From contig CM069141.1 of NCBI GenBank assembly GCA_035221665.1, forward strand, positions 54,684,001 through 54,748,000: 64,000 nucleotides of DNA, given 5' to 3'. Source of the DNA: Okamejei kenojei. Taxonomy: Eukaryota. This document shows positions 5,169 through 42,617 of the stretch, in pieces. Each line of letters opens with the position of its first letter. Position 1 is the first letter of the stretch. Below the pieces are notes generated by a model. It was not told where the DNA came from and ran no database searches. It worked only from the letters and a program-made list of their open reading frames with translations. The position numbers were made by a program, and so were the translations under genes.

Positions 5169-5256
5169 ATGAAGCTACAATTTTTCTGCAGCAGAGTCTA
5201 CACAGAGTTGATGTTCGATTTTTTAGTGTTTCTACTTCCATCTATTACCGCAGGAA
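5169..5256 (+). CDS. Gene A leader (signal peptide) exon, MKLQFFCSRVYTELMFDFLVFLLPSITAG
   Basis: Polypyrimidine acceptor ttttttttacag ends at 5152, in-frame TAA at 5157 precedes ATG 5169, hydrophobic core ends in ITAG, phase-1 donor A|gtaagt at 5256/5257. The acceptor implies an upstream non-coding exon that I could not locate. Confidence 0.75.
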
Positions 5257-8200
5257 GTAAGTGCCATATCTTTAGTTTAACAGTTTAGAGATACAGCACG
5301 GAAACAGGCCCTTTGGCCCACCGGGACCGCGCCGACCAGCGATCGTCACACATTAACACCATCCTACACCCACCAGGGACAATTTATGCGTTTACCAAGC
5401 CAATTAACCTACAAACCTGTACGTCTTTGGAGTCAATCTGTCCAACATAATCGCATTGCTTGACCACAGTAGAGTGTTTAATGAAATCACATTTCCAGTA
5501 TTCAGCGAGTTTGTAAGGTCTTTACTTCCATCTCCATCCTCCTTTAAACAACAAATATATGTTCACAATGCAGATTTTGTTGATTGATTAAAAGATACAG
5601 ATTGAAATATGGCCTTTCAGTCCACCAAGTCCACATCAACCCTCGATTAACAGTTCACACAAGTTTCTTTATTATCACACTTTTGCATCCACCCCCTACA
5701 TTTTAGGGGCAATTTACAGAGGCCAATTAACTTATAAACTACACGTATTTGGGATGTGGGAGGAAACTGGACCACCCAGAGGAGACCTACCTCTGTGGCT
5801 CGAGTGGTCACACAGAGATCATGCAAACTCCACACGGACAGTTCCTGAGGTCAAGATCAAACTTGGGTCTCTGGCACCATGGAGCAGCAACTCTACCAGC
5901 TAAGCCCTTCTGCCATCCTTCACTAATTCAATAATGTTCCGTACTTCAATAATGGCATTGGAGATGAGATGTCACTTGAACAGTTACAGTAAGACATGTC
6001 TATTTTTATACGCCAACTCCCTTGAATTAAAGGCAAGCATTTCAATACTTACCTGTTGAATCTGTGTTTCATAAATGAGGGCTTTCAAATTCCTTTCTGC
6101 AGCTTTCCACAGTCCTTCTCTCTTTAGGTAACAATCTGCCCATTCAATCTACTTCCCAGAGTGAACAACTTCATATTTCCACGTGATGGCATAGCAAGTC
6201 AAGCTACAGCCTGCCAGCTCCAGCCAGTTCAATTCAGATCTCAGATGCTGTCTATGTTGAGTTTGCTTGTTCTTCCTGTGATTGAGTGGGATTTCTCTTA
6301 TATCCCAACGATGTGTAGGTTGGTTAGATACATTGCAATATTTGTTTCCTCCATTAGCAACCTGAAGCATTTCATAACATTTATGCTATATATGCGCAAC
6401 AGAGTGAATGGAGTGTTGCAAGGGCAGGTACTGAAAAGTTCAAGCCAACCATCGTTCACGCTAGTTCGATGATATCCCATTTATCCATCCACTCCCTGTA
6501 CACCAGAGATTGTTTACAGTGGCCAAATTATCTACAAACCCTCACATCTTTGGGACATTGGTGGAAATCAGAGGCCATACGGAGGAAATATCCAAAACTC
6601 TACACAGCCACCACCTGAGATTAGGATTGATCCCAGGTCTCTGGCCCTGTGAGGCAGCAGCTCCACCACCTGCACCACTATGCCACCCTGATGATTCTGC
6701 ATATCACAAGTAGTGGCAGCAATGAAGGCAAAATGATCAGCTGATGATGAAAAGATGATTACCAGAAGAATTCCAATTCTATTAGTTTAGTTAAATCAGT
6801 GAATAGTATTTGTTTTATGCTAATCAATCATTCATTGTGGGTGCTGGATTGATGGGCTTCATTTGAAATATTAAATATTTTAGTGTTGGATCTAATGTTT
6901 TTGACAGGTGGTCCAGAACATATTTACTTTTCAACTCCTGCTGCTGAAATTGTTCTGAAAGGACCAGAGCATCCAGAAAATAGTCAGCATGTGTTGAAAT
7001 GGAAGCCACACTCATGGCAACATACCCAGAAACTGGCATCTATTGTCAAAGGATATTGGGGAGACTGGAGATTGGAATTGAATCGGCCCTCGGAAAAGAA
7101 CGGCTTGTACAAGGACATACTACTTTCCCATGGTATCCAATATATAAAGATAAGACAACCTGCATTTAACTTTGCGGGATTGTTCACATTGATTCAAAAA
7201 CAACCAACTAAGCAAATTGTGAAACAATATGAATTATTTGGACTCAAAGGTAAGTAGGATGGTATCGGAGAGAGTCACAGTAATGTGCTACAATGCAATT
7301 CGGTAATGTAGAGAGATTGTGTTGGAAAGAGCTGAAGATACGGGTTTATAGCATACTTTTTATGTCCGAACATGGATATAAAGAACTGAGTAACTCAGTG
7401 GGCAGGCAGCATCTCAGCAGAAAAGGAATAGGTGACGTTATGGGTCGAGACTCTTCGTCGGATTGAGAGTCAGGGGAGAGGGAAATCTCTAGTTTCCCTC
7501 TCCCCTTACTCTCAGTCTGTAGGAAGGTCTTGACTCGAAACATCATCTATTCCTTTTCTCCAGAGATGCTGCCTGACCAGTTGAGTTGCCCCGGCTTTTT
7601 GTGTCTATCTTCAATAATCAATGGTTGATATGATAATTACATCACCTGATGTTGAACGAAAATCTCAATTTATTAAGCAATGCAAAGATTTTTTGTTTGA
7701 TCAGCCAAAAAGCTGTTTGCCAGAACATCGAGATCTATCATCATATGCTGACAATTAAAAAGGCAATGCACAGCTGCCCTGTATGTAAAGTGGATAGAAA
7801 TATGTTACTGCTGTGAAAGATGACATGATGATAAAAATGCAATACTTTAGGGGAAGTCTAGAGTCAAGTCAAGTCAAGAGAGTTTATTGTCATGTGTCCC
7901 AGATGGGACAATGAAATTCTTGCTTGCTACAGCACAACAGAATATTGTAGGCATAAAAACAGATCAGATCAGTGTGTCCATATACCATATATATTACACC
8001 AATTCCAGTGGGGTGGGGGGGGAGGCTTTCTGGAGCACTAGTATGGGGTGTTGTGGGCTGAAGGGACTGGTTTACAGAGGGCTAGAATGGACATTGTGGG
8101 CCGAATGGATTCTTGGGCGGGTGGCTCAGTCACTCAAGGCTGTTGTGCTGGCAGCTCACTCACTCATGGCTGGTGGGCTGGCAGTTGACTCACCGCTATT

Positions 8201-9922: not shown

Positions 9923-12900
9923 TACTGTGGCAGAAGTGTCCAAAAGCAAGGGGCATGGGTATAAAATGGGAAATAAGTTCATAAAGGATGTGAGGAAGAG
10001 GCTTTCCACCCAGAAAGTGATTGGAATCTGGAGCACACTGTCTGAGAAGGAGGTGGAGGCGGATCCTCACCTAACATTTCTGAAGATGCGGACAACTGCT
10101 TCAATAGTTAAGGCATTGCAGGTTACAGATTCCTCCACATGGGTCCTTGATTCTCCAATAAGTTCAAGTGCAAGGCCATAAGTTCAGGTCTGCTTACCTG
10201 ACCCTGGTGGGGCAAGACAGAGTCCTTTCAGGTCAATTATATCCTTCCATGCCATGGGTGTTCTTATGTCAAAGCTAGCCTGACAGATACATGCTGATAA
10301 TGGATACATCCTGTGGACACTTTGAATCCAGTCATTGGACTGTACACACCACTGCTCACTCTGGATCTCACCGATGTGTTTTTCCACAGTTGAGATAAGC
10401 CCACAGCAGCCTGTGGTGGGCAATGACGTCACACTCAGCTGCACCATCTCCAGACTCTCAGATACAGTCAGCCTTCATTGGAGACCAATGGGCTCATCCC
10501 AGCAGAGCAGGAGCAACACTGATCAGATCCGCCTCAATAACACAGTCTATCTGATGATCCGACATGTTACAGTGGAGGATGGGACGTATGTGTGTGATGT
10601 GCAGGAAAAAGGAAAAATCGTTCATACAAGGAAAGCAGATTTTGTTGTGAATCATGGTAAGTGCTCATAACTTACATTAAATGTTAAAGAGTCTGAAGAA
10701 CGGTCCCAATCCAAAACGTCATCTATCCATTTCTCTCCATGGAGTGCTGCCTAACCTGTTGAGTTCCTTCAGCAATTTGTCTCATTGTTCAAGATTCCAG
10801 CGTCTGGAGTCTCTTGTGTCTCTCTAAGCTTAGTTTTAAGTTTTAAAGATACATCATGGAAACTGGTCCTTCTGTGGTAGGGTTCCTTGATGATAGATGT
10901 CAACTTCTGGTGGGAGTTGATCATGGTGTACAAAATGATGTGAGGTCCTGGCAGGGGAACAGGGAGTAGGACATATTTCCCTCAATAGTGATTGCAATAA
11001 GTTGTGGACAGATCCGAGGAGATTAGTGGAAGAAATAGAGGAGTTGGCAAATGGTTTTCTTCACCAGGAGTGATACGTGTGTAAAACTTACTTTCCGAAG
11101 GTTGGTGAAGGCAAGATCTTTCCATCTCATTAGAAAGTACCTGGATGAGCAGATGGATCTAACTCATAATGCTTTAGATCAGGACCTGGGCAATGGGATT
11201 AATAGAAGGAGCTTCTCTTTCCTGATAGGAAGATGATGGGCTGAATGGCCTCCTTCAGTGCTCTCAGTTATTCAATGGAATAGAGAAAGGGAAAATAGAA
11301 AGAGAAAAAGGAGAGAAGGCAAAGTGTAAAGATTTGCAGGTTGAAAAATACGCAATGATAAAACCCAGAAATTGTCACCAGCTCAGTAACCTGGATTGAT
11401 GGAAACCCACAAAAAAGATCACTTCACATCAGACCCATCTTCAGGGCAGCACAGTGGTGCAGCAGTGGAGCTGTTGCCTCACAGCACCAGATACCCAGGT
11501 TCAATCCTGTCTATGGTTGCAGTCTGTGTGGAGTTTGTACATTCTCCCTGTGATCATGTGGGATTCCTCCAGGTTTTCTAGTTTCCTCCCACATCCCAAG
11601 ATCATGTGGGTTTGTAGGCTAATAGGCCTTTGTAAAATTGTCAATGTGGACTATTTTTTCTGTAGATGTGGCACTCTTTTCTTCATTCTGTTTCTCTATA
11701 ACATTACCTGATGTACTCATGTATGGCATGTTTGGCCTAGATATAACACAATTGTTTTCATTGTATCTCAGTACCCATGGCGATATGCAACAATAATAGA
11801 TGCTGCTTGACCCGCTGAGTTCATCCAACAATTAGCTTTTTATTCAAGTTTCCAATATCTGCAATCTCTTATGCACGTTACATGGCTTAGATGACTTCTG
11901 GCAGTAAAATGTTGCTAATACAAGTAAAATATTGGTTGGGACATTACTTGAGGAATTATTCCTGATAAATACAGATTTCAACTGCTTGTAGCAAACCTTA
12001 TTTGAATCATTAGAAATTTTCACCCAAATGGCAATGGCTACCATTTGTGCTTGCTCAGTCCCAGATTAACCGACCCATGATATCACACCAAAAAAAAATC
12101 GGATCTAATCAAAAAGAGAAAAAAAATTATTTTCACTTTCTCTAGCAACTTTTATTTGTTGATTTTCATTTATGTATAAATTTTAAATGGCCTGAACTGA
12201 AAATAAATTGATGAAGTTCTTCAAAACATCAATAATCTTTATAAAGTTCTGATCAATAATATATGAATGTTTTTAATTTTCTCTTCACTTGTTAATGTGG
12301 GAATTTCTCCAGAAATCAAACAGTCAGCATTGATGGAGTTCCATCATCACATATGGTTATTTAGACAATAGACAATAGGTGCAGCAGTAGGCCATTCGGC
12401 CCTTCAAGCCAGACTGATTTACTAGATATACAGTGCCCTCCATAATGTCTGGGACAAAGACACATCATTTATTTATTTGCCTCTGTACTACACAATTTGA
12501 GATTTGTAATAGAAAAAAAATCACATGTGGTTAAAGTGCACATTGTCAGATTTTATACATTTTTGTTTCACCATGTAGAAATTACAGCTGTGTTACAACT
12601 GTGAAATTACTGTGAAATTACAGTCCCCCCACATCAGGACACCATAATGTTTGTGACACATAGCTTTACAGGCGTTTGTAATTGCTCTGATGTGTTTAAT
12701 TGCCTCCTTAATGCAGGTACAAGAGAGCTCTATGCACATAGTCTTTCCTCCAGTCTTTCCATCACCTTTGGAAATGTTTATTGCAGTTTATCAACATGAG
12801 GACCAAAGTTGTGCCAATTGAAAGTCAAATAAACCATTATAAGACTGAGAAACAAGAATAAAACGGTTATGGAGACATCAGCTAAACCTTAGGCTTACCA

Positions 12901-15900
12901 AAATCAACTGTTTGAAACATCATTAAGAAGAAAGCGAGCACTGGTGAGCTTACTAATCGCAAAGGGACTGACAGGCCCACAGCTGATGACAGAAGAATTC
13001 TCAATAGAATTCTCTCGACAGATCAGAAACACTATTCAGGAGTCAGGTGTGGATTTGTCAATGACCACTGTCCGCAGAAGACTTCATGAACAGAAATACA
13101 GAGGCTACACTGCAAGATGCAAACCACTGGTTAGCCGCAACAAATAGGATGGCCAGGTTACAGTTTGTCAAGAAGTACTTAAAATAGCAACCACAGTTCT
13201 GAAAAAAGGTCTTGTGGACAGATGAGACGAAGACTAACATATCAGAGTGATGGCAAGAGCAAAGTAGAGGGGAGAAGGAACTGCCCAATATCTAAAGCAT
13301 ACCCCTCCATCTGTGAAACACGGTGGTGGGGGTGTTATGGCCTGGGCATGTATGGCTGCTGAAGGTACTGGACTCACGTATCTTCATTGATGATACAACT
13401 GTTGATGGTAGTAGCATAATGAATTCTGAAGTGTATAGACACATCCTATCTGCTCAGGTTCAAACAAATGCCTCAAAACTCATTGGCCAGCGGTTCATTC
13501 TACGGCAAGACAATGATCCCAAACATACTGCTAAAGCAATAAAGGAGTTTTTCAAACCTAAAAAGTGCTCAATTCTTGAGCGGCCAAGTCAATCACCCGA
13601 TCTGAACCCAATTGAGCATGCCTTTTATACGCTGAAGAGAAAACTGAAGGGTACTAGCCCCCAAATTAAGTATAAGCTAAAGATGGCAGTAATACAGGCC
13701 TGGCAGAACATCACCAGAGAAGACACCCAGCAACTGATGAAGCCATTGCATGCAAAGGATATGCAACAAAATACTAAATATGACTACTTTCATTTACATG
13801 ACATTGCTATGTCCAAAATATTATGTGCCCTGAAATGGGGGGATGATGTATAAACACTGCTGCAATTGCTATAAGGTGAAACCAAATTGTGTAAAAACGC
13901 CCTTTATTAAAATCTGAGAATGTGCACTTTAACCTCATGTGATTTTTTTGATTCCAAATCTCAAATTACAGAGGCAAATAAATAAATTGAAGTACAGAGG
14001 CAAATAAATAAATTATGGGTCTTTGTCGCAAACATTATGGAGGGTTCTGTATCATAAAGGGTTGTTAGAGACTTATAGAGTGATACAGCATGGAAACAGG
14101 CCCTTCGGACCAACTTTCCCACACCTGCCAACATGTCCCAGTTACACTAGTCCCAGCTGCCCGCGTTTGGCCCATATTCTTCCAAACTGTCCTAAACATG
14201 TACCTATTTAACTGTTTCGTAATTGTTGGGAAAGTGCTTGCTTCAACTACCTCCTCTGGCAGCTTGTTTCCCCATACCCCCACCACCTTTGTGTGAAAAA
14301 AGGTACTGCTTGGATTCCTATTAAATCTTTCCCCTTCACCTTAAACCTATGTCATCTTGTCCTCGATTCGCCTACTCTGGGCAAGGGACTCTGTGCATGT
14401 AAACATTTGTGGATCTGTGCATCCATTGTTCTAACATAGTATTCTTCATGTTTATTGCAGAGTTTTTCCTCAACAGTATCACCCTATATCGTGGGGCCAC
14501 AGATCAGAGTGAACTCCAACTGAACTGTTATCTCCGAAATGAACAATTCACTTATGCTGAATGGATCTGGAGCTCACCTCTGCATCAAATTCAGAATAAA
14601 GAAATAGCAACTGCATCAAGATCTCAGCTAGTCCATCTTAACAGCACTTACTTTAAGAATCGAATGGCAACTACAATGACCACATTTTATGGATATGATT
14701 TCACTGCAAAGATTGTCCCTGTATTGTTTGAAGATGCAGGAGTTTATAAGTGTTCCATGGATTCCAATTGGATTGTGACTTTTGAACTAATCACAATGAA
14801 AGGTAGGAGAATTCATGTGCAATCAATTTCTGACCTTAAACCAGTGGAAGCAACACATTAAAAAAAGTAATAATCATCAGAGCTGCCCGTTCAAAGGCAA
14901 TGCTATGGCTTCCTCATTTAACTGTGCTCTGTTTCAGTAATAATGGATATTGCTGGGCAGACTTCTCATTTGAGTAGGATGTTTCCAAACAGTTCCGAGC
15001 TCAGGAAGCAGAGCAGAAAGGGTTGCAAAACAAAGAGCCACCACTGTTTCAGCAAGGGGAAAATGCTGTTAGAAAATGTGTGCATGCTCCAGTGACAGGA
15101 AATGTGTCGATAAATCTTCCCAGGGAACCAAAGAAACTGCATATGCTTCTGATCACTTACAGCCAGGAGGCGGAAAAGGTTGAACACANNNNNNNNNNNN
15201 NNNNNNNNNNNNNNNNNNNNNNNNNNNNNNNNNNNNNNNNNNNNNNNNNNNNNNNNNNNNNNNNNNNNNNNNNNNNNNNNNNNNNNNNNNNNNNNNNNNN
15301 NNNNNNNNNNNNNNNNNNNNNNNNACATAATTAAAACTCTGATCTTGTTATTTTCTGGTTTGCCGGTCTTTCTATTTTCGCAAAAACGGTTCACGATAGA
15401 GCTACGATTACGCACCTTTCTCCTGTGTTACGATTGCACCAAGTTTCGTTCAGATTGGTGGAGGCTGGTACGAGTTATTGAGGTTTAAAAATCTTAAAAA
15501 CTGATCGTGCACAGTTCGATTGCCTCTCCTGCCATTCAGCACCGCGCAGATTGGTCCCTTCTCATGTCACTCCGCGGGCGGTCTGCCCTTTCCTGCTGTG
15601 AGTCCCCATCACACCACCAACCCCTCCCCTCAGGTCCCCCCTGCCTACAACCCCCTCCCGCACACAACCCCACCACGCCACAACTCCCCCTCTCGCCCAC
15701 AACCCCCCCTCTCGCCCACAACCATTTGTATTGTCACTGTTGTAGGGCAACAAATAGTGAGGTCGAATAATTAGTAAATAAGGATATGGATTGTGCTAAT
15801 GTGGTGACAGGGAACTGCAGACAAAGCCAAAAAGTAGAGACATGGGATGCAGCAGAGTGATGGAATGCAGCAGATACCCGTCTCAAGAACTTCATTGATT

Positions 15901-17878: not shown

Positions 17879-20800
17879 TGGTCAGGGCTCTGGAACTTTG
17901 GCCTGGCCATAGCTGGCAGATCTGTTCCCATAGTCAACTTCCAAGGCCAATTGTGCGGGATGGAATCTCGCCCCTCTGGCGGCCTAGGCAGACCCTTCCA
18001 GTATCGTTTGACTCCTGTTGGAGATCGTGACCTCTTGGTCTGGCAAAACGGATAATCCAGAAAGGCTCTGGAACCTATTGTGCTGGAAAATCGGTAGTGG
18101 ACCTGTACCTGTTTTTCAGATTATTGGCCCAGAATGCTGGTGATGTATCAAATGATAAAATTCATATTCAAAATCTAAAATTATTATCTTCTTTCCAAAG
18201 TTACAGCTGAAGAGACTGAGGGGAGACACTATTACCTTGACCTGCTCTGTGTCTCATGTCACTGAATCAATGAAACTTGTGTGGATTAATGGCAATGACA
18301 GATATGTTGGAGAAAAGACTCTGACTGGGGATGAGAAATCAGTGAGGCTGACAATTCAGAAAGCTGATGAAGACCAATGGGACTGGAAGTGTGGTGTGTT
18401 TTCTCTAGACAGGCCTCGGCTATTCATCCCATTTTATTTGGATCCCAGTGGTAAGTAACTTGACAAGGTGTTTGCTTTTTATACTGTATTTATCTGTGAT
18501 TATACATGGGTTGCGTTCCTAGAAAACCATCCATGTCTTGATAGGGCGGCACGGTGGCGCAGTGGTAGAGTTGCTGCCTTTCAGTGCCAGAGACCCTGAT
18601 TTGATCTTGACGACAGATGCTGTCTGTACGGAGTTTGAGTTTTCTCCCTGTGACTGCATGGGTTTTCTCTGGGTGCTCTGGTTCCTTCTCACACTCCCAA
18701 GGTTTGTGGGTTAAATGGCTTCTGTAAATTGTAAATGTCCATGGTGTGTAGGATAATGGTAGTGTACAGGGTGATTGTTAGTCAGTGTGGATATGGTGGG
18801 CTGAAGGGCCTGCTCTCAAAAGTCTAAAGTGTTTGCATATTTAACAGAACAACACAAATGGTTTTCCCGGGATGCAACCCATTACAATGCAAACCATTGC
18901 GATATGGAAAATCAATTACACAACTGGGAAATAGTCAACCAGTCAGCATTGGAGGAGTTCCTTCTGTATAGGATTGGTTCAAGAGAGCAACTCATAAACA
19001 TCTACACAAGGACCATTACAATCAAGCACTGCCCCAGTTCTCCACAGTTGGAAAATTTGCAACTGTTTCTTCCACATTTTGTGTTTAGAAGATTATTTTT
19101 TCCTCACATAAATTCAATTGTGATTCTTTCATTCCATATCTCAAATGTTTTGGTCGTGTTTGTGAATTCAATGAGTGCAAGTTTCCATTACCCTTGGAAT
19201 CTCATCAGAATATTCCTGTAACTTCCTCCTATGGATACTATGTTGGAAACCCCCATCGATGGATGAAACCTGAGAATTATATTTTATTTACTTCAAGAGT
19301 GCTTGGCATACTTACAAAGTCAGCATTTATTTCCCAATATTAACTTTTCTTATAAAGATATTGGTGAACCAATCCAATACATATGTAATGCAGAAAACAA
19401 ACTCAAAAGCCTGTCATTCTCTTTGAGATATCACACTTGGCAAAGTATATATATTTTAAATTTAATGAGCTAAATGAATAGAATGGTATCTTGCAAAAGT
19501 TTGGATTTGAGAAATTCCATTCCATTATAAATTATAATCATAATCATAATCATAATCATATTTTATTAGCCAAGTACGTTTTGCAACATGAGGAATTTCA
19601 TTTGCCATACAGTCTTACCAATAAAAAGCAGCAGAACACACAAAATACATTTAAAAATAAACATCCACCACAGTGACTCCTCCACATTCCGCACTGTGAT
19701 GGAAGATGAAAAAAAGTTTAATCACTTCCCTTCTTTGTTCTCCCTCGGTCGGGGGCCTTCAGCCTTCCATTTACGGGACGATCTTGGCTCCTGTAGTCAG
19801 TGGCATTTAGGCACTTGCGTCGGGGTGATCAAGCTCCTGCATTGAGGGGATCTCAGCTCCCCCGTGCCGGGCGATCTGGCCCTGGGTCGGGGCTGGTCAA
19901 AACCTTCTGCGTCGTTTGGAACTCCCAATCTACAATCTCTACCCGAGACTGCAAGCTCGTTGATGGTGTAATCCACAGGCCACGGTTGGAGCGTCGATCG
20001 CAGGCAAAGGATCGGTTCCGATGGTAACTCCACGTCCCCGCGGTGGGGCTCAAAGTCAGTCCTGAGCAAGGCCTCCAGCTCCATGATGTTAGGCTGCAGA
20101 GCGACCGTCCAGAAAACGATCGCATCACTGGCAAGGGAAGAGATTGAAAAAAGGTTTCCCCCGACCCCCTCTCCACCCCCCACATAAAACAAACCAGAGA
20201 ACATTACAAAGGATACAAATGATACAAATGACATTTATTATTACATACACCAATTGGTGTAGTGAAATTTGACTTGTCATTGCAGCACACAAATAAAGAT
20301 AAAACACAACATTAAAGAATTTAACAATAAACATAAAAACATGCCCCCACAATGGTTCCCACTGTGGGGGATGGCATCAAAAGTCCAGTCCCGTCCCCTG
20401 TTCACCCATTGTCGGGCCTATTGAGGCCTCCGCAGTCGCCGCTATGTCAGCCCGATGCTTCAGGCCCTCTCGCCGGATGATGAAGCTCTGGCGTTGGGTG
20501 AACACTCTCAGCGCCTCGGAGTATATGGAGCGACCGTTTCATCCGCGGAGACCGCGGCTCCCAAAGTCCATGGGTCGCGCTGGTCGGAGCTCCGACTCTG
20601 TCGACCTCGGCGTGAGATCCCAGGCTCTGCGGTGTTTAAGCTGAGTGCCGCTGGAAGCTCCACAGACCGCAGCTCCGCAATGTTGGAGTCGGCGGTCACA
20701 GCACTGGGGAGCTTACCGCACTGCGACCCGGGAAAGGCATCGCCCGCTCCATGATGGTGCCTCAGCGCTGCACCGCCGCCGAAGCTGACATCCTGGCCGG

Positions 20801-32800: not shown

Positions 32801-35800
32801 AGGTGCCGGTATATTTTCAAGCTAAACCCAAATTTGCTATGTGTGATTGGAACTTGCACTTTCTGGACTATGAGACCATGCTTGAGAGAATTTGTTTAAT
32901 GTCCAGTTAGCCATGACCATGACATTATTCCTTAACCAAACAAGATTATATGCTCATAATGTGGAGTAAGGTTGGATTTAAGAAAATATTATTTACTTGA
33001 AGACAGTTGAATGACAAACATATCACATTAAAAAAAAATCTTATCACTGCAAAACCATGAATAGTACATAATCATAATTGGTGTTATATCGGAAAGGATT
33101 TCAGCTAGTTGGTAACCAGAGTTTGTGTTGTTCAATGAACGATATTAAAAGGAAAGCTAAGTACATTCTGTTTGGGCAGGTTTGGGGAATCAAAGACAGA
33201 AACCTCCACAATCAAACAGAAACATAGAAGATGAATTCCACCTTTATTCAAATACCAATGAAATCCATCAAACTCAAGGTAATATTGTAATAAGATATAT
33301 TAAATGTATTAAATGGATTTTGCAAGCATTGCTTTCCATTTTCTCAAGGTATTCCATCTCTCCTTTTGATTAACTGCTGTGCGTTTATCCTGTTACAACT
33401 CAGCTGTAAACAGCAAAAGACATTTGTTGATCTTTAAATGCGTTTTCCATTTTTAATGATCATTCTTCATCACAGACATGTGACTGAAAATATTTCCAAT
33501 GTTTAAAATGCAGAAGGGTCCTAAAACACAATCTTCAAAAAGCACAATTTCAGATACCTATTCAAAGACAAGAGGGAATGTACCATCCATATCTTAAGCC
33601 AAGGGTCATCAACCCATTGGCCCCTCCTACACGTCACTGCCCACTGATCATAAAGGCTCATGATAAGTATACATAGATCAAATCTTAATTTGAATGTTTG
33701 CTTATTTGCAAGTGGCAGACTTGTCAGTTGCCAATCAATCAAACAGTCCAGTTAACCTGGATTGATACAAAATGCTGGAGTGACTCAGCAGGACAGGGAG
33801 CAACTCTGGATAGAAGGAATGGGTAATGTTTCAGGTCGAGATCAGAAGAAGGATCTCAACCCAAAACGTCACCCATTCCTTCTATCCAGAGATGCTGCCT
33901 GTCCCATTGTATTACTCCAGCATTTTGTTTCTATCTTCGGTGTAAACCAGCATCTGCAGTTCGTTCCTACACAGTTAACCAGGAGTTGGGCTAGCCATTT
34001 CCTCATTGCTGTCACAAGGTGGTTCTGACCATCTTTTGATGTTGCCCATACATCAGCCTGGGCATACCTACAAAAGTCCCAGTTACTGGTGCCTGGCATT
34101 TGGTAAAGTGTCAGATAATAAAGGCTCTACGGCAGCTCTTAATAAACTAAAGCCAGAAAGAAGCCTTGCACTGTTGAGTCAAGTCAAAATGACCCATTGC
34201 AAAACTTGTTCAGGTTTATTCATTAACTTATGACTGGAAACTTGGATAGAAACTTAAAAAAATGTATTCATTATAAACTCAGGAAATTATGTGCATCCAT
34301 TATAAGGTTTTATACAAAATTACATAATTCAAAATGTTAATCTTCAACCTCTATAAATGTTAAGAAATCGCAGGACTTAACATCCTGCACATGTTTATAG
34401 CACACTTTTTATTTGCCATGTTCTTCATTAATGGTGTAACTAATAGCTCCTTATGTATCCCATTGCACTTACCCACTTATATCTTAGGTATTATAATCCC
34501 ACTACTGAATCTCCAGCAGATATCCTTAAAAAAATGATTAGAGCCAGATTGGTGGATTTACTGCCAATTAGCTTATTCATTGATTGTGAATTCATCATTA
34601 ACAACTTGTAATCACAACTAAATCCACTAATTGCATTGCATTTAGACAATAACTAGACTAAGTGAGACCCGTTGGGTCCCTGTCACACAGGAGGCTTGGT
34701 CCCCCAATGCTATATTCCACCACTCACCCATAGCCCCCAACTGCAGAGGCGCAGCTTATTTCCCCTCATCCCCCAGCACTCCCACCCCCACCTTTTCACC
34801 CTCCCTCTTCTTTCCCCTCTCCTCCCCTCCTCAATCCCTCCCTCACCCCTCTCTCCCTCTCCTTTTCCCTACTCTCAGTTCACTTCCTCCCTCCTTCCAT
34901 AACTCCTCTCCCCTCCCTACCCCCCTTCTATCCCCCTCACTATCCCTCCTCACCTCCCCCAATACCCTCCTCTCCCTCTATTCCCAACTCCCTACCTCCC
35001 CCGCTCCCCCCTCCTCTCCCTCTATTCCCCTCCTTCCCACTCTCCCTCCTCACCTCCCTCTTCTTTTCCCCTCGCCGCGCTGCTTTTGGTCCTACCCTCC
35101 CCAATCCCTCCCCCACCTCTCCTTTCCCCTACCCTCAGTCACTCCCTCCCTTCCTCCATAACTCCTCACCCCTCCCTACTCCCATCCTATCCCTCTACCC
35201 CTCTCCTCCCCCACTCTCCCTCCCCAGAATCTCGAGATTCCCGCTCCTCTCCCTTTTTGCGTTTCCCAGAGGGGCTTCAGCCGTCGGCACCCTTGGATCG
35301 GCCCACAAGCACCAGCAGCTATGGCCGCACCGGCGTGTGGGTGGGGAGTGGGGGGGAGGAGAGAGCACGGAGAAAAGACGGGGGAAGTCATTGGGGAGAG
35401 GGGGGTATCAAGGGGGATTGGGCAGGAGCCAGCGAGGGGGACTAGAGAGGAAGGGGCTGGAGCTGCGGGGCGTTGCGATGTGTGTTTGGGATTCACAGTG
35501 GGCGCTGGACACTCTCCTCCGCCAGGATAAGATTCACCGCTTTCTGTTTGGCGACATCGCCGCGCTGCTTTTGGTCCTTCCGCCGACCACCCACAGCGTC
35601 GTTCAGATCCAGTAAAGATGCGATGGCGCAGGAAAGGGGGACCGTCCCGGGAAGTGACTGGAGAAGAGACCAATCCGCGCGGCGCTGACTGGCAGAAGAG
35701 GAAATCGATCTGCGCACGTGCATTTTTTACAATTTTTAAACCTTGCTACCTTTTACAATATACTACCGATCGGAACGAAACTTGTGGCACTCGCAGCACA

Positions 35801-38800
35801 GGAGAACGGTGAGTGAGCTGGTGAAAAATTGTAGCGCTATCCTGATTAACTTAGATCTCAATAGGGAAATTACACTTTTTTGTAAAATTAGCTGATGAAG
35901 CCTTTATAGAACAAAGCCCTTTAAATTGCTGAAGCAGAAAAATATTTATTTTCCAGGTAGTAACAAGACACTCATACCTGAGACCAATCATAAAGCTGAA
36001 TATATGGCTGTGAACAGGAAGTCAAAGAAAGAAGGTAAATGGATGAATCGTATTCTACATCCCTATTTCCGTATGTATTGTCAAACAAAATGCTGTCAGG
36101 TTTCGTAGAGACAATTTGATTTTAATTATTTGGCCTGGAAATCCTAAAGATCAGTAAAGGTTAATTTTATGTGAGTTTCACAACCTTTAGCAAAATATAA
36201 TTTGCAATGGTGATCCATAATACAACCCTCTGTTTCTGGTGAGTTTAATCATTCTGTACTTCAGTTTACAATTAAAATGCGTGTTTTGCAGTAAAGAAAT
36301 ATAGAGGGGACACATTACCGATCACTCCCTGGTGCTTAGTGTAACCACAGATCCTACATCTAATATAGATACCATTTTCAATTATAGTCTCATTGTCACA
36401 AAAAGTGTAAGATCAAACATCGTACATTGAGAAAGCATAACACTAACAACAGATTATGCATGTTTTAATCCAATTGATTTGTTGTACATCTCAATGGACA
36501 GTATAATTGAGAGTTGCATAGTGAATCCAAAACATTCACCCACTCAAATGATGATCCACTACCATTCAACATACTTCACCAGCATGTAAGTGCTTCTAAA
36601 ACCACTCGAGAAGTATTAACACTAAAGATTATTTCTGGTATGATCATCCCCTATTAGACAGTATTGCTTTTTCCAGAACTGAACACACTGTTCTGACAAG
36701 ATTAATGGTTCAATTAGAAATATTTATTTTCCAGGAGTTAAGAAGACACCATATCCTGAGACAGATGACTTTGCTGAATATTCAAATGTCAATAGGAAGC
36801 CAACACAAGGTAAGAACATTTCTGTGGAGGGATTATTAGTCATAGAAAGTCAGATTTCAGCAAGTGAAACGTTAGCTTCAAGTTAAATGCTTTGGTTTGA
36901 AATCTCTACAAATACATAATGAAAAACTGAGACACTAATTCTCAAATTGCTGCATGTATCCCTATGAGTTCTGGGATATTTTTCTGCACATAATACTGTA
37001 TGCACTGTGTGCCATGTGTACGAATTTGCCTTTTGTGTGATTGTGAGATTGTGTGCAGCACAACAAATTAAGTAAAGTCACAGTGCACTGGCTCCTCACT
37101 TAGCTCTCCGCAGCAGAATCTTGATTTATTAGCTCTCTTGGTCCTATTGAGCTTTCATAATACTCAAGGCTATGTACCACCCTCTACTTTAACATAAGAT
37201 ATCTGTTCAGGCTGCACATTGTTGTGGCTTTGTGGGAATGTACACACTGTGACTTACCCGTGCTAGGATCTGAATCCCTGGCCTTTGCTGACACTCAAGG
37301 TGTAGAGGCTCCCTGTGAGCGTTGGTGTTAGGCTGGCTGCAATGAGCTGTTTGTCTCCTCTGCACTGAGATTTGGGGAGCTCAAACCTGCCCTCTGGCAT
37401 AACAGCAGTGTTGACAGCTACCTATGATGTCTCGTCACTACCTGTTGGACGTGGTTGAAGGTTTTGCCTTCCCCTCTCTAATGGTAACTGTTGAGCTTGT
37501 TAAAAGGGAGAGATCTCTGGGCTGCGGAGAGCTGTGCAACCAAACAAACAGAGGGAAAGTTAACAGTTTTCATCATGTCCACCGGGGGAGGGGGGGAGGA
37601 GGGGGGGTGGGGAGGGGGGGAGGAGAGGGGGGGGGGGGAGGGAGGGGGGGGGAGGGGGGGGGGGGGGAGGGAGGGTGGGGGGGAGGGAGGGGAGGGGGGG
37701 AGGGGGAGGGGGAGTTTCACACAGCAATAGACTGGTGAACGACTCACATTCGATGCCCAGTGCAGCAGTGCTATCAGTAATTCGTCTCTCTGTAAGTAAT
37801 GCATAATGACGACTTTGAGCACCGCTTCCATTATGCTCTAATTCCTGGGAGCGTTCTCCGCACTAAAGCCCAAGTCTGTAAAAAGTGATTCATGCATGGC
37901 TTTGAGATTGTCGATTACACAGCTTCCCAACATTTACTGTCCAGCCTCAGACAGAAAGAGGAAACATTAGGTTATTCGGGAGGCATCAAATTTTGTGGAA
38001 AGGCAGGTGTTTGAGAGCTAGGGGAGGTCGGAGCCAAGAGAATAACAGTGGATGACCAAACAGGAGTCAGCCATTTTATAATTTATAGCATGTAATAAAT
38101 CAGAAACCATGCAGTCTGGGATGTTGCACAGCAGAGTTAATCTGGCAACACTTTTGCCTTGGAAACAGAAAGCTGTGTTTTCAAGTTCCAGTCAAGAACT
38201 TGAATGTGTAACTCAGATCAGTGCTTCAAGGGGGCTGCAAAAGTGCATTTAGTTTAAATCAGCTTGAGAGTTGGTTGAAGATATTTTGAGGGAGAGTAGG
38301 GAGCTGGCATGATGAATGGTTTAATGGTTAATTTATTATCAGCAAGGTGTAGCAAGGTTTAGTGAAATTATTTTTTTGCATACAGATCTGTAAGATTATC
38401 CCTGGTTAAGGCCAGAATACATAGCAACAGCCCACTGTGTTGCAAGAGTCACCAAATGTTGTTGCCATTATCAAAGTCCAAGCTGCAGCTGGCCATTATG
38501 GCCTATTGTAGCCATTGCCTCCATCTGGCTCGCCAGTGAACTATCATCCTTCTCCTCACCCATCCATTTTCAGCCTTTCCCGTAACTCCTAGGGAAATTG
38601 TTCCCTAAACTGTTGGCAACAAAACCAATTAATTGCGTGCTTTATTTATATTGAAACATCAATAATGCTATTTACTTACCAATATTGATATCACCTCAAA
38701 ATTAATCCATTACTTACCTTGTCTGGATCTCTACATATAGAAGCAAATTCTTTGTTTCCATCTTATCTCTGCAGATACTGAGGAAGATATTCATTATGGA

Positions 38801-41800
38801 TCCATCTCCTTCGAGCCGAAAGCATCAGATGGTAAAGTAGATTTTGTTTGAATATATGTTTTCATTTTTTATATTTTGTAGAGGGTAAAATGGACACGGC
38901 TGAGGACACATAGGAGTTGCTAACTGAGTGAATGCTTGTCATTTGCACTGTCCCATACTCAGCTCATTGACTTCAGTATAACTGAAAACAGGCCTATCGC
39001 TTAGCAGTGTAAACATTTACAACCTTCCCCAATGCACACAGACTGTGTTCAGATTTGCTCAACTAGTTCCAGTCCTCCCATAACATGTTCTGACATTGAT
39101 TCTAATAAATGTCAAAATCTACTTATCGGGAAAATTTAGATAAAGAGATTTACTATAACCCAGTGGGGAAAGCATCTTGTTGAATTAAAATGTAATAAAA
39201 ATGAACTGCAGATTCTGGTTTATACCAAAGATAGACATAAAATACTGGAGCATCTCAGTGGGTCAGGCAGCATCTCTGCAGAAAATGGAAAGGTGCAATT
39301 CGGAACGGGGTGCTTCTTCAGACTATCATGTTGAATTCATTTTTTGATGAGTGGTGTCTATCTTGAAACAACATGAACTGATAATATTGGGTGCACCCGA
39401 AATACTGTACATTGCTGAACATGCAACATTCACCCATCCATAGTGCAGGACAAAGCAGCCCACTTGATTGGCACCCCATCATCCAAAACATTAATTCCCT
39501 CCATCATTGGCACACAACGACCGCAGAGTGTACTGTCCACAAAATGAACTGCAGATGCCTTAGGCTTCACAATCGTACCTCCACAACCTGCATCCTCAAT
39601 AAACAAGTAGGACTAAGGCAGCATGGTGTCTGGAAACACCACCATTTGCAGGTTCCCCTCCTAGTTCCATATCATCCTGACTTAGAATATCTTGCTGGTC
39701 CTACATAATTATGGGATCATGCAACTCCTCAACAATAGCACAATGAAACGAGCTTCACCAGATGGATTGTTCTCCAAGAGGCTGTCCAGCATCATCTCAT
39801 CTCAAGGAAATTTTGGAGGAGCAATAAACGCTGGATGTGCCAGCAATGCCCAGATCATCAACAAAGTATATACTACAAAAAGGGAGAGTTTGACGCTCTT
39901 CCCATTGATTAGTGGGGCAATGACATCGCAAGATCATGATGCAACCTTACAGATCTTGCTCAAGTGTGTTTAGAAATATAATGTGGAAACATCCACTGAG
40001 CCCACATCAACCAGCAATCATCCCTACACTAGTTCTACAACCCATTTTCTGATCCTACGCACTAAGGGCAAATTACAGAAGCCAATTAACCGATAAACCT
40101 GCACATTTATGGAATGTGGGAGGAAATGGGAGAACACGGAGAAAACCCATGCAGTCACAAGGAGAAAGTGCAAACCCTGCGCAGACAGCACCCAAGGTCA
40201 GGATCAATCCCAGGTCTCTGGTGCTGTGAGGCGGTATATCTAATGCTGTTCTACTGCTGCACCACTGTGTCTCTGTGTCCAAAATTGCATAACGCTGTCT
40301 TTAACAGACTTTTGTTCAGTTTCACAAATTTCCAAATAAACATCAGTGTGAAATACAGCACATATTCAGTGAACTGGAAGAGGGTGAAATCCAATATCCA
40401 GGCAAAAAGGCTGAAGTTGGGCTCTGGTCCATGCAATGCAGTTAACCCTGACTGCTTTTGCAAGATGCATTTCCCACAAGAACAATGATCAGTTTAGTTT
40501 AGTTTAGTTTAGTTTAGAGATACAGCGCAGAAACAGGCCCTTCGGCCCACTGGGTCCACGCCGTCCAGCGATCCCCACACACCAACACTATCCTTCACAC
40601 ACTAGGGATATTTTTTACATTTTACCAAGCCAATTAACCTACAAACCTGTACATCTTTGGAGTGTGGGAGGAAACCAAAGATCTCTGAGAAAACCCATGC
40701 AGGCCACGGGGAGAACGTACAAACTCCGTATAGACAGCACCCGTAGTCAGGATCAAACCCGGATCACTTTCCTCTTTGGAGAAATAAATCTTTGGGTTAT
40801 CTTTTGGTAACCACTTGAATTTTCATAGTTTTGACGCACATGCACTTATATCCTCGATAATATAATAAGCAAAAGAGTGATGATCAGTGACATGACTACT
40901 ATTGTTTTCATGTTGCCTCTACACCTCAGTGGAAGTAATAGTGATAACCATACAGCATGTGAACAGGCGCTACAGCAATTAAGTCCATGCTGACTGTCCA
41001 GTACACACACTAATTCTACATCAATACCATTTTATTCTCCACACATTCCCATCACTTTCTTCCCAGATTCAACTGGCATCCATTGGGGGAGTCCAGAACC
41101 AAGGGTCACAGTTTAAGAATAATGGGTAGGCCATTTAGTACTGAGATGAGGAAAAACCTTTTCACCCAGAGAGTTGTGAATCTGTGGAATTATCTGCCAC
41201 AGAAGGCAGTGGAGGCCAATTCACTGTATGTTTCCATGAGTGAGTTACATTTAACTTTTTGGGCTAAAGGAATCAAGGTATATGGGTAAAAGCTGGAATG
41301 AGGTACTGATTTTGGATGATCAGCCATGATCAAATTGAATGGCAGTGCTGGCTCGAAGGGCCGAATGGCCTACTCCTGCACCTATTTTCTATGTTTCTAT
41401 GTTTCTGCATTCCTGTGGGTAATATACCGTGCCCAAATGTCCTACCAACCTGCACATATATGACACGTGGGAAAAAAACGGAGGACCTTAAGGAAACCAT
41501 GCTGTCATAGAGAGGCCATGCAAATTCATCCTGGCCAGAGCTGGAAGCCAGGGTTAAAACTGCATCACTGGCACAGTGAGGCAGTAACTCTACCTGCTGC
41601 ACCATTGTGACACCTTCATTTCCTGCACTTATTTACCAGGAGATTCATCTGAAAACACTCATATCCACAGCTCCTGGCTGAGCCAGAAACGTTTTGTGCT
41701 GGCTCCCAAGTATCATGAAGGAGTTTAGTTCACAAATGGCCATCCCCGCAGCTTACTTTGTAAATGCAGTGCCTAGAACACACACTGCAACTGGGTTTTC

Positions 41801-42617
41801 TGGGAGTTAATATCTTGCTGATCTGATCCTTTACTAGAAAGAGGTAAGGATCTTTGTGTAGGAAGGAACTGCTGATGTTGGTTTACACTGAAGATAGACA
41901 CAAAATGCTGGAGTAACTCAGCTGGACAGGCTGAGTCTCGATCTGAAACCTCACCCATTCCTTCTCCCCAGAGATGCTACCTGTCCCACATCAATTGTGT
42001 TTATTTAAGAATCTTTGTGTTTTTGTGTTCAGGACAATGTGTTTAGGACATTTGTATTCCATTTCTCAGTTCTTTTGTCAATGCATCTGCTGGTGCCATC
42101 CTTTAATTGTGATGTTTGCAATTATCACAGGGCACAGGCATGGTACACAACCCCCTAATCAACCTACAAATAATGTAAGTACATTGATTACCCTTGGAGA
42201 TTTCCCATGTCTAACAATATTATTTTCTGCAACAAATTGCCAGAGGGTGGTGAATCTGTGGAATTCATTGCCCCAAACGGAGGCTGAGTTATTGGGTATT
42301 TTTAAGGTGGGGAATGATAGATTCTTGATTAGTACGGACATCAAAGTTTATGGATAGAACACAGGAGAATGGGGTAGAGAGGAAAAAACAGATGTCATCA
42401 TCGAATGATGGAGCGGACTTCATGGGCCGAATGACCTAATTTTGCTGCTGTATCTCATGATCAAATTAAATTGATAAAGATGTTTTATGATGTAGAGTGA
42501 AGCAATAGCAAATCATTGCCATATCATTGCAACTTTTCTCTCTTTCAGAACCCGGTTTCTTCAGATGAAGACGGTTCATCTGTCATCTATGCACAGATAG
42601 CACAAACAAAAATTTGA
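5169..42617 (+). CDS. Gene A (whole span): type I membrane IgSF receptor with 8 Ig domains, (V-C2-V-C2)x2, plus TM and an ITIM-bearing tail; CD4/LAG-3/G6F/DICP-related (WxC clan)
   Basis: 16 coding exons with GT-AG boundaries and compatible phases: 5169-5256, 6908-7249, 10390-10656, 14461-14802, 18201-18450, 21500-21844, 23872-24144, 24249-24587, 26593-26859, 30338-30445, 33180-33278, 35957-36034, 36735-36809, 38775-38831, 42131-42174, 42549-42617. They sum to 3043 nt, one nt too many because of the D4 exon; about 1013 aa if corrected. Confidence 0.85.
6908..7249 (+). CDS. Gene A D1 exon: V-type Ig domain lacking both canonical cysteines
   Basis: tttgacag|GT...AAAG|gtaagt, 342 nt, phase 1-1. 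Contains EIVLKGPEHP...LKWKPHS...IKIRQPAFNFAGLFTLIQ...YELFGLK and is clearly homologous to D5. Confidence 0.85.
7990..9260. repeat. Unclassified interspersed repeat with an internal duplication and minisatellites (possibly a Helentron-type non-autonomous element)
   Basis: About 8350-8660 is repeated at about 8970-9250. Units of about 42 nt occur x3 at 8205-8330, and ggcaactttaatta and 31-nt gcatttccaaaccaaaggcaacacagcttta arrays lie at 8662-8870. Both copies end cttttaNtNatatag. Confidence 0.5.
10390..10656 (+). CDS. Gene A D2 exon: C2-type Ig domain
   Basis: tttccacag|...CATG|gtaagt, 267 nt. VEISPQQPVVGNDVTLSCTIS...LHWRP...LMIRHVTVEDGTYVCDV shows the B-strand Cys, C-strand Trp and DxxYxC. 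Confidence 0.92.
12431..14049 (+). mobile_element. Tc1/mariner DNA transposon with decayed transposase
   Basis: Flanked by TA; long TIRs (cagtgccctccataatg / cattatggagggttctg). Transposase remnants TTVRRRLHE...KPLV, QDNDPKH and SPDLNPIE, with stops and frameshifts. Confidence 0.92.
14461..14802 (+). CDS. Gene A D3 exon: V-type Ig domain
   Basis: tttattgcag|...AAAG|gtagga, 342 nt. ELQLNCY...EWIWSS...FTAKIVPVLFEDAGVYKC. Confidence 0.92.
15189..15324. other. Assembly gap (136 N) in the D3-D4 intron
   Basis: Run of N. Confidence 0.99.
15325..15725 (-). repeat. Fragment of the repeat family also present at 34650-35840
   Basis: Reverse-complement similarity to 35640-35840 (gaccaatc.gcgcgg.gctga.tggcag...gaacgaaactt). 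Confidence 0.55.
18201..18450 (+). CDS. Gene A D4 exon: C2-type Ig domain with WxC motif; 1-nt frameshift near 18220-18223 in this assembly
   Basis: ctttccaaag|TTACAGCT...AGTG|gtaagt, 250 nt (not a multiple of 3). VTAEETE/GDTITLTCSVSH...LVWINGND...LTIQKADEDQWDWKCGVF. It reads actgaGGGGagac where paralogous D8 reads actgaGGGagac. Confidence 0.85.
18543..18830 (+). mobile_element. tRNA-derived V-SINE (HE1-like), representative copy
   Basis: gggcggcacggtggcgcagtggtagagttgctgcc head plus a V-domain-like core. Further copies at about 4787-5075, 5275-5435, 5600-5910, 6430-6690, 11443-11650, 17050-17290, 22225-22500, 24677-24890, 28545-28680, 39970-40270, 40490-40765, 41400-41610, 45706-45950, 59470-59620 and 62610-63615. 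Confidence 0.85.
19532..21040 (-). mobile_element. Two tandem GC-rich non-autonomous retroposons with microsatellite 3' tails (Rex/Babar-like ends)
   Basis: (cataat)n and (gatacaaat)n tails followed by tttatt, CpG-rich bodies, and related sequence at 20140-20200 and 20880-20960. Confidence 0.5.
21053..21272. mobile_element. Palindromic MITE (PIF/Harbinger-like)
   Basis: TIRs aagggcctgtcccactttcac / gtgaaagtgggacaggcctt, flanked by TTA/TAA. Confidence 0.7.
21500..21844 (+). CDS. Gene A D5 exon: cysteine-less V-type Ig domain (paralog of D1)
   Basis: tccttgcag|...AAAG|gtaagt, 345 nt. KFVLKGPDSP...WEWRPHS...LRIRKPIFEHAGLFTWTQ...WELFGIK. Confidence 0.88.
23872..24144 (+). CDS. Gene A D6 exon: C2-type Ig domain (paralog of D2), F-strand Cys replaced by Trp
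   Basis: tttccacag|...CAGG|gtgagt, 273 nt. VEADSPRPVMGSDITLSCTISRLPDTVSLHWKP...NLYTWEAQ. Confidence 0.9.
24249..24587 (+). CDS. Gene A D7 exon: V-type Ig domain (paralog of D3); absent from the ORF track
   Basis: tcttgcag|...ACAG|gtaggt, 339 nt open frame: DLHNKTYTVYRSVTDHNKLDLICEASAEFIETKWTWRS...FSVRIVPIRFEDAGVYTCSVSSYEYVTIELITVT. Separated from D6 by a 104-nt intron. Confidence 0.92.
26593..26859 (+). CDS. Gene A D8 exon: C2-type Ig domain with WxC motif (paralog of D4)
   Basis: ttaaacag|...ATGA|gtaagt, 267 nt. VTAEPSDAVTEGDTVTLTCSVSH...LVWINDD...LIIPKADGARRKWKCVVF. Confidence 0.92.
26992..28368 (+). mobile_element. Penelope-like element, 5'-truncated (RT C-terminus, GIY-YIG endonuclease, 3' tail)
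   Basis: MGPSYTCLF...YLRYIGDCF...FLDL and CTSSNLIYCI...YIGETKRRLGDRF. Possible TSD aatcttcc at 26984-26991 and 28373-28380. Confidence 0.9.
30338..30445 (+). CDS. Gene A transmembrane exon
   Basis: tttttgttttaacag|...ACAG|gtaaag, 108 nt. KYTFKHYPVLITGTLALLLIIVLVVVLCLRKCKLT has an uncharged TM, a basic stop-transfer segment and juxtamembrane cysteines. Confidence 0.9.
30645..31530 (-). mobile_element. Rex1/Babar-clade LINE RT 3' fragment, inserted into a CR1 tail
   Basis: KYADDTRVVGLI...YREEV and KFLGVQI...FYRGTIESILSSCISVWFG. Confidence 0.85.
33180..33278 (+). CDS. Gene A cytoplasmic exon 1 (HLYSNT)
   Basis: gggcag|...CAAG|gtaata, 99 nt, phase 1-1. GLGNQRQKPPQSNRNIEDEFHLYSNTNEIHQTQ. Confidence 0.75.
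33763..33972. mobile_element. Palindromic element made of two inverted Penelope 3'-tail copies (representative)
   Basis: acaaaatgctggagt...tctggatagaaggaatgggt / acccattccttctatccaga...actccagcattttgt. Similar hairpins at about 4310-4520, 7330-7612, 25105-25275, 29178-29330 and 54865-55060. Confidence 0.7.
34652..35840 (+). repeat. Unclassified interspersed repeat with a long C/T low-complexity tract and CpG-rich body
   Basis: Starts actagac; pyrimidine tract at about 34770-35225; the 3' part matches 15325-15580 in reverse. Confidence 0.5.
35957..36034 (+). CDS. Gene A cytoplasmic exon 2 (AEYMAV)
   Basis: tttattttccag|...GAAG|gtaaat, 78 nt. GSNKTLIPETNHKAEYMAVNRKSKKE. Confidence 0.8.
36735..36809 (+). 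CDS. Gene A cytoplasmic exon 3 (AEYSNV), duplicate of exon 2
   Basis: tttattttccag|...CAAG|gtaaga, 75 nt. GVKKTPYPETDDFAEYSNVNRKPTQ. Confidence 0.8.
37584..37712 (+). repeat. G/A-rich low-complexity tract (G-quadruplex-prone)
   Basis: Near-continuous G runs. Other homopolymers at about 9891-9922 (C), 16657-16680 (G) and 17845-17877 (C). Confidence 0.8.
38775..38831 (+). CDS. Gene A cytoplasmic exon 4 (ITIM IHYGSI)
   Basis: tctctgcag|...GATG|gtaaag, 57 nt. DTEEDIHYGSISFEPKASD. Confidence 0.82.
41084..41405 (+). mobile_element. CR1 3' tail fragment
   Basis: GESRTKGHSLRI...FTQRVVNLWN followed by a (tttctatg)n tail. Confidence 0.8.
42131..42174 (+). CDS. Gene A 44-nt micro-exon (phase 1 to 0)
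   Basis: attatcacag|GGCACAGG...AATAAT|gtaagt encodes GHRHGTQPPNQPTNN. It is needed to put the last exon in frame, and gene B has a micro-exon of identical length and phase. Confidence 0.75.
42549..42617 (+). CDS. Gene A terminal coding exon (ITIM VIYAQI)
   Basis: tctctttcag|AACCCG encodes NPVSSDEDGSSVIYAQIAQTKI*, with TGA at 42615-42617. Confidence 0.82.
   Translation, partial: NPVSSDEDGSSVIYAQIAQTKI

Follow-up and report, generated by a model that had tools for sequence, protein, structure and literature searches.

The stretch of DNA analysed here, called the window below, comprises 64,000 nucleotides of Okamejei kenojei (assembly GCA_035221665.1, contig CM069141.1, positions 54,684,001 to 54,748,000 of the forward strand). 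It contains a gene for a receptor with eight immunoglobulin (Ig) domains, the tail exons of one paralogue, and otherwise only transposon remnants. On the plus strand we read eight stop-free Ig-type exons with AG/GT borders (D1 to D8), as an earlier interpretation made from the letters alone (the sequence-only reading) had proposed for the ectodomain. Together with a leader, a transmembrane and four cytoplasmic exons, these are likely to form one gene of 14 exons. The features of the locus are:

5169-5256, plus strand: leader exon; the signal peptide MKLQFFCSRVYTELMFDFLVFLLPSITAG opens with the ATG at 5169 and the exon ends in a phase-1 donor; identity to the leader of Mobula birostris 66%
6908-7249, plus strand: D1, 342 nt; cysteine-less V-set domain with C-terminal ELFGLK
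10390-10656, plus strand: D2, 267 nt; Ig domain (I/C2-like) with a canonical DGTYVC instead of WxC
14461-14802, plus strand: D3, 342 nt; V-set domain with DAGVYKC
15189-15324, no strand: assembly gap (N) within the D3-D4 intron, touching no exon
18201-18450, plus strand: D4, 250 nt; C2 domain with WKC, extra G in the run 18220-18223
21500-21844, plus strand: D5, 345 nt; cysteine-less V-set domain of a conserved "internal" type, 73% identical to Mobula D5
23872-24144, plus strand: D6, 273 nt; Ig domain with the F-strand Cys replaced by Trp (LYTWEA)
24249-24587, plus strand: D7, 339 nt; V-set domain (Pfam E=3.5e-8), separated from D6 by a 104-nt intron
26593-26859, plus strand: D8, 267 nt; C2 domain with WKC
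30338-30445, plus strand: stalk and transmembrane exon; uncharged helix VLITGTLALLLIIVLVVVLCL followed by RKCKLT, 71% identical to the Mobula transmembrane exon
33180-33278, plus strand: cytoplasmic exon LGNQRQKPPQSNRNIEDEFHLYSNTNEIHQTQ with a YxN motif, located by tblastn with family tails
35957-36034, plus strand: cytoplasmic exon SNKTLIPETNHKAEYMAVNRKSKKE, located by tblastn with family tails
38775-38831, plus strand: cytoplasmic exon with the first immunoreceptor tyrosine-based inhibitory motif (ITIM 1, IHYGSI); its counterpart in Mobula isoform X1 is 75% identical
42496-42617, plus strand: last exon by homology; TGA at 42498-42500, ITIM 2 (VIYAQI) at 42582-42599, terminal stop at 42615-42617

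All Ig exons were in phase 1-1 and had a length that is a multiple of three, with D4 as the sole exception. The cytoplasmic exons at 33180-33278 and 35957-36034, also in phase 1-1, had good splice sites and were kept in paralogues. No charged residue was found in the transmembrane segment, in agreement with the sequence-only reading. In the orthologue proteins D3 was joined directly to D4, with no exon between them. The join across the gap at 15189-15324 is plausible, because the domains flanking it, D3 (left) and D4 (right), had their best matches in one and the same Mobula orthologue, both within its first cassette.

The ectodomain was confirmed as a tandem duplication of a four-domain cassette, with an amino-acid identity of 39% for D1 and D5, 55% for D2 and D6, 39% for D3 and D7, and 51% for D4 and D8. 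The synonymous divergence (dS) between cassettes was 0.5-1.6 and the ratio of nonsynonymous to synonymous divergence (dN/dS) 0.28-0.59, pointing toward an old duplication with both copies under constraint. The WKC announced for D4 and D8 was seen in both. WxC was missing from D2 (TYVC) and D6 (LYTWE), and D2 carried YxC throughout the family. The YTW of D6 was common to skates, Mobula, Hypanus, catshark and sawshark. We had considered the Cys-to-Trp change in D6 as a sign of decay, and rejected this because the same YTW is kept across sharks and batoids. Searched as single exons against Pfam, D1 and D5 gave no match and the other exons matched only generic Ig families.

Orthologues and the wider family

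A profile of D1 and D5 gave 37 matches among 1.84 billion representative proteins. The named vertebrate proteins among them were all "uncharacterized" or "hypothetical". Proteins with the order leader, D1 to D8 and transmembrane segment were found in Mobula birostris (XP_072120627/30, 992 and 974 aa) and M. hypostoma (XP_062910921), and every domain of the window gene had its positional counterpart in Mobula as best match. The identity to Mobula was 66% for the leader, 50, 69, 59 and 63% for D1 to D4, 73, 72, 65 and 62% for D5 to D8, and 71% for the transmembrane exon. In a maximum-likelihood tree of the first domains of the cassette (a-type), D1 of the window grouped with the first a-domain of Mobula (support 100/98). 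D5 was placed with internal a-domains of skates, Narcine, Hypanus, Mobula, catshark and sawshark, in a clade of 14 rows (98/95). Judged from these sequence comparisons, the gene is probably orthologous to the eight-Ig genes, as yet unnamed, that manta and devil rays carry.

We classified 147 family proteins by domain type. The basic unit was a-b-c-d, and we are reasonably confident that a and c are V domains, the former cysteine-less, b an Ig domain with YxC and d a C2 domain with WxC. Most proteins had a single abcd unit, and abd and acd variants occurred. The models with several cassettes included abcdabcd in Callorhinchus, abcdabc in Leucoraja, cdabcd in Amblyraja, bcd plus three abcd cassettes (15 domains) in Scyliorhinus canicula (XP_038652085, 1710 aa), and ~20 domains in an Anguilla model. 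Overall, relatives with 4 to ~20 domains were present in sharks, skates, chimaera, sturgeon, bichir, bowfin and eel. Because the D5 clade of internal a-domains spans sharks and batoids, the cassette doubling predates the split between these two groups. The duplications in chimaera and eel look independent.

The sequence-only reading had not recognised the gene as a described one. A literature search found no paper describing the family. The gene is not unique: its eight-domain Mobula orthologues are already in RefSeq, unnamed, and belong to a large multigene family listed in RefSeq/UniProt as "uncharacterized protein".

The closest proteins to the window were skate proteins with 83-89% identity in D5-D7. 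The two cassettes appear to have evolved at different rates: the terminal branch was tenfold longer for D1 than for D5 (0.70 vs 0.07).

State of the assembled copy

The gene is real and conserved, yet to judge from its sequence this copy, as assembled, is not intact, and the sequence-only reading, which took it for complete and spliceable, does not hold on three counts: a frameshift in D4, a TGA opening the last exon, and two cytoplasmic exons that it had overlooked. The conserved D4 acceptor ccaaag|TTACAG sets the exon start at 18201 (250 nt), and a second AG would set it at 18207. Compared with D8 and the Mobula orthologue (VTAEPSDSVTEGDT), D4 has TAEETEG in phase 1 and then GGGG at 18220-18223. 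The same run in D8 is GGG, that is, D4 holds one extra G. By a local phase count, the frame continued from D3 into D4 stops at the TGA 18263-18265. Ahead of the conserved GDTITLTC there is a single AG in phase 1, with a start at 18226; it is weak, with a purine-rich tract and six AGs upstream. Skipping of D4 keeps the frame because all Ig exons are symmetric, and eel relatives with an abc-abcd order exist.

At the homologous acceptor 42496, the last exon reads G|AG TGA. The stop replaces a Gly of the paralogues, which read ...KA(S/T)G|G(S/H)... (e.g., GGSSDSTLPYN in Rhinoraja), against a stop followed by SNSKSLPYH here. VIYAQI is in frame only through a weak donor, AAA|gtagat (38836), combined with a strong internal acceptor at 42549, in another phase. 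The start at 18226, the donor at 38836 and the acceptor at 42549 together give a clean open reading frame of 967 codons.

As read from the assembled sequence, a full protein by canonical splicing is thus impossible. There are three explanations: the copy may be a null allele or pseudogene of recent origin, the defects may be errors of the sequence, or alternative splicing may bypass them. That the gene is intact and expressed is a serious possibility, somewhat short of an even chance. The extra G would then be either a private allele or an error of the assembly or of a homopolymer run, and the TGA would merely trim the tail or be bypassed by the 38836 donor and 42549 acceptor. Apart from these defects, all 14 exons are open and have the conserved residues in place. 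Past the shift, D4 retains 63% identity to its Mobula counterpart, on par with the neighbouring domains, and the last exon has an open stretch of 38 codons that includes a perfect ITIM. The alternative splice path yields a clean frame, and the assembly contains gaps and is hence not of finished quality. On the other hand, there are two independent defects in a single gene, one of which is a substitution, seldom an assembly error. The rescuing AG lies behind six others in a purine-rich context, the 38836 donor is weak, and the first cassette was found in no annotated skate protein.

Relation to CD4, LAG-3 and other described receptors

The window gene was proposed by the sequence-only reading to be an inhibitory receptor of the WxC clan with a doubled CD4-like ectodomain. 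What stands of this is a receptor gene of cartilaginous fishes with ITIMs and a doubled V-C2-V-C2 ectodomain, and an affinity to LAG-3 and CD4 at the level of the family; the WxC does not extend to D2 and D6. We searched the PDB sequences with a profile of eleven family members. LAG-3 (human and mouse) was second overall (E=3.7e-15), ahead of pIgR (6e-11), CD22 (2e-9) and CD4 (~3e-8). The V-to-C2 junction and the WxC aligned to D1-D2 and D3-D4 of LAG-3 (gnWtC with GPWGC and QPWQC).

Structure modelling, which had been suggested as a check, agreed with the profile search. In the AlphaFold2 (AF2) model of P0052, a skate paralogue with four domains, the predicted local distance difference test score (pLDDT) of the ectodomain was ~80-96, and two strands of 16 residues (129-144 and 333-348) bridged V into C2. 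The top eight PDB matches by Foldseek were LAG-3 and CD4, over all four domains (E 6e-16 to 2e-13). VIA-align gave Z scores of 15.2-16.5 to four-domain CD4, and rat CD4 D3D4 was superposed on the model with a root-mean-square deviation of 2.6 Å over 169 residues. An AF2 model of D1 built from the family alignment (pLDDT 88.8) had a V-set fold (Z up to 12.7). Because of these fold and profile results, the CD4/LAG-3-like reading is supported at the family level.

A number of observations weigh against this reading or against the placement of the gene. The TM-scores of the four-domain matches were low (0.2-0.45), because of inter-domain flexibility. The window exons taken singly gave only generic Ig matches, including D4 and D8 against the PDB. 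D1 folded alone gave no CD4-specific signal, with NTB-A, NITR, nectin, CAR and Nav-beta4 tied, and D2 and D6 are without WxC. With respect to the orthologues, no annotated skate protein closely matched the first cassette of the window gene (D1 41%, D3 47% and D4 56% identity to the L. erinacea model), and the gene models of the other species are automatic predictions. With all this considered, we still find it likely that the gene belongs to an ancient and not yet described multigene family of jawed fishes, related to CD4, LAG-3 and G6F-like.

It is rather improbable that the family has already been described in fishes under a different name, for example as skate MDIR, as UrIg/UrIg2 or as the G6F-like of teleosts. 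MDIRs, which Cannon and co-workers are said to have described in 2006, are reportedly modular, ITIM-bearing skate Ig receptors, which counts in favour of this explanation. Teleost G6F-like, for its part, has four Ig domains and a tail in which YxN precedes an ITAM (immunoreceptor tyrosine-based activation motif), and its similarity to CD4/LAG-3 has been reported (PMC3528668). Like teleost G6F-like (the thrombocyte collagen receptor) and mammalian G6F (LY6G6F), the window gene has four Ig-like domains per cassette and YxN as the first tyrosine motif of its tail (HLYSN). In the ESM Atlas, the bichir member P0145 adjoined a "putative g6f-like" protein (0.96, 201 shared features) and, by structure, the first cassette of Mobula was nearest to g6f-like and CD4 clusters at a TM-score <0.5; we take both as leads only.

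The signalling part of G6F-like is different: its ITAM, split over two exons, is activating, whereas the window gene carries ITIMs, and no Yxx(L/I)x6-12Yxx(L/I) ITAM was found in its tail. G6F-like is not known to have eight-domain forms. Compared by name, none of 89 + 9 + 1 homologues was an MDIR or G6F-like protein. The 89, which are homologues of the skate paralogue, also included none from Raja eglanteria, and no named G6F-like protein came up when the sturgeon and bichir members served as queries in word-indexed searches for homologues. An identity with MDIR thus found no support in the homologue names. UrIg and UrIg2 were rejected, since they are built from VJ and C1 domains, a different architecture.

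The chance that two four-domain genes, D1-D4 and D5-D8, were misread as one is very small. Most family members have four domains, and the Amblyraja annotation divides a similar locus into two models. However, a hydrophobicity scan and tblastn with family leaders, transmembrane segments and tails detected no leader, transmembrane or tail exon between D4 and D5. The donor of D4 and the acceptor of D5 share phase 1, and D5-type domains are internal, not N-terminal, in complete gene models. D4 continues directly into D5 in the Mobula proteins (...PYYLDPSGNRTSIYFFHQEG...), and the two domains are joined in gene models of at least eight other species: two of Mobula and those of Narcine, Heterodontus, Leucoraja, Amblyraja, Callorhinchus and Scyliorhinus. 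The continuity for which the sequence-only reading had asked confirmation is thus backed by these gene models.

CD4 and LAG-3 have four domains with WxC in both D2 and D4; the CD4 tail carries CxH, the LAG-3 tail is a single exon with (F/Y)xxL(D/E), and D1 of both is a single exon in sharks (PMC10768021). Like them, the window gene has the order V-C2-V-C2 in each cassette, WxC in the F strand of the fourth domain, D1 in a single exon and, as predicted in the paralogue model, long V-to-C2 strands. It differs in that D1 and D5 are without cysteines, D2 and D6 have YxC or YTW, and the cassette is doubled (in catshark and eel it occurs four or five times). Its tail, with YxN and ITIMs, is spread over four exons after the transmembrane exon, and it belongs to a large multigene family instead of being one gene per genome. 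The tail was rightly said to have no CxC Lck-binding motif: we found no Cx(C/H) in any tail exon, although the tail is multi-exon as in CD4, and no (F/Y)xxL(D/E) in its four cytoplasmic exons. A genuine CD4 or LAG-3 gene, be it an orthologue or a lineage-specific duplicate, is hence hardly credible, for although LAG-3 and CD4 were the best solved-structure matches of the family and D1 is a single exon as in their shark genes, the four-domain ectodomain, WxC in both D2 and D4 and either tail motif are not found here, and the named matches of the D1/D5 profile included none with a CD4 or LAG-3 name.

Cytoplasmic tail, possible function and surroundings

The tail reads, in order, RKCKLT, G-LGNQ...HLYSNTNEIHQTQ (YxN), G-SNK...AEYMAVNRKSKKE, D-TEEDIHYGSISFEPKASD (ITIM 1) and the last exon (ITIM 2). 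The tyrosine motifs are YSN (HLYSN, exon 33180-33278), EYMAV, and the ITIMs IHYGSI and VIYAQI. The ITIM consensus is (I/V/L/S)xYxx(I/V/L), and YxN is a Grb2-type motif. Both ITIMs fit the consensus and are present as the sequence-only reading had noted, with the reservation that VIYAQI is out of frame under canonical splicing. The same set of tail exons was common to paralogues of skates, rays and sharks, and to sturgeon LOC117426425, whose tail carries AVYSN..., LHYVTF and VVYSSI.

Given the ITIM consensus and the YxN motif, phosphorylation of the tail tyrosines would recruit SHP-1/SHP-2 and possibly Grb2, and the recruited Src homology 2 (SH2) domain phosphatases would dampen leukocyte activation. 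The receptor is probably inhibitory through its ITIMs and SHP phosphatases. The membrane-distal, fast-evolving cassette D1-D4 probably binds a ligand and the slow-evolving cassette D5-D8 probably serves as a stalk, because D1 is 50% and D5 73% identical to Mobula and their branches measure 0.70 and 0.07.

The tail resembles that of the ITIM-bearing multi-Ig receptors LILRB, KIR-L, CD22/Siglec and PECAM-1, in the uncharged transmembrane segment, in two ITIMs ~25-30 residues apart (VIYAQI compares with VTYAQL of KIR/LILRB), and in belonging to a clustered, rapidly diversifying multigene family. In contrast, the affinity to them is only that of a generic Ig fold, and the domain types and the cassette logic differ.

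Sturgeon members other than LOC117426425 had a Lys in the transmembrane segment or a YEN tail; in P0143, P0144 and P0147 (Huso, Acipenser) the Lys went with a short tail. By their sequence, the Lys-bearing members look like activating partners of the ITIM forms, suggesting a family of paired receptors.

CD4 and LAG-3 are thought to stem from the duplication of a V-C2 pair. Close outgroups to them are, to our knowledge, scarce, the candidates being a lamprey "CD4-like" protein and G6F-like, both debated. Because the family is large and old and has the rod architecture of CD4/LAG-3, it offers many sequences for rooting CD4/LAG-3 trees. It spans chimaera and sharks to sturgeon and eel, with WxC only in the fourth domain and tails with tyrosine motifs, and so lets the ancestral state be asked: WxC in D2, the tail motifs, or a cysteine-less D1. 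Whole-cassette multiplication is recurrent (8, ~16 and ~20 domains). The family may be among the main ITIM receptors of cartilaginous fishes, where natural killer (NK)-like and myeloid regulation is poorly known.

More speculatively, and on balance doubtfully, the family could be a third, so far unrecognised branch of the CD4/LAG-3 clan, possibly the G6F-like lineage, with paired ITIM and activating-like members and a variable number of cassettes, surviving in cartilaginous and basal ray-finned fishes, clustered and rapidly diversifying. If so, it would be a functional analogue of KIR/LILR made from CD4-type V-C2 rods, and the fast-evolving distal cassette might read the major histocompatibility complex (MHC) or another polymorphic self ligand.

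On the minus strand, the transmembrane and tail exons of a second family member lie at 54177-54561, 61140-61271 and 63710-63814, indicating that the window is inside a family cluster. This second gene is convergent (tail to tail) with the eight-Ig gene, and its Ig exons lie past the end of the window. It has the transmembrane segment ...YLSHIVTPMVLVLLLGLVGATIIYRSRIHKP and two ITIM-type exons, EEIHYAAVRFQKRP and EEIYYAAVSFQKRP. The end of its last exon, ...ETSVIYGTVIQ before the stop, has a near-identical counterpart in the tail of a "vascular cell adhesion protein 1-like" protein from Rhinoraja longicauda.

Transposon remnants were found both within and outside the introns of the eight-Ig gene. 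The D2-D3 intron holds a Tc1/mariner-type transposase remnant (13317-13850, plus strand; Pfam DDE_3, E=1e-9). Related GIY-YIG (Penelope-like) retroelement remnants lie in the intron after D8 (26981-28300, plus strand) and downstream of the gene (58177-58941, plus strand; Pfam GIY-YIG, E=6e-4). Directly after the transmembrane exon, on the minus strand, an open reading frame at 30887-31408 gave a Pfam match of the ALKBH8_N type (E=2e-16); as a reverse-transcriptase-like frame adjoins it, it probably formed the tail of a retrotransposon without long terminal repeats (non-LTR). The region between the two convergent family genes, 46000-50000, is very AT-rich (GC content 0.27-0.28).

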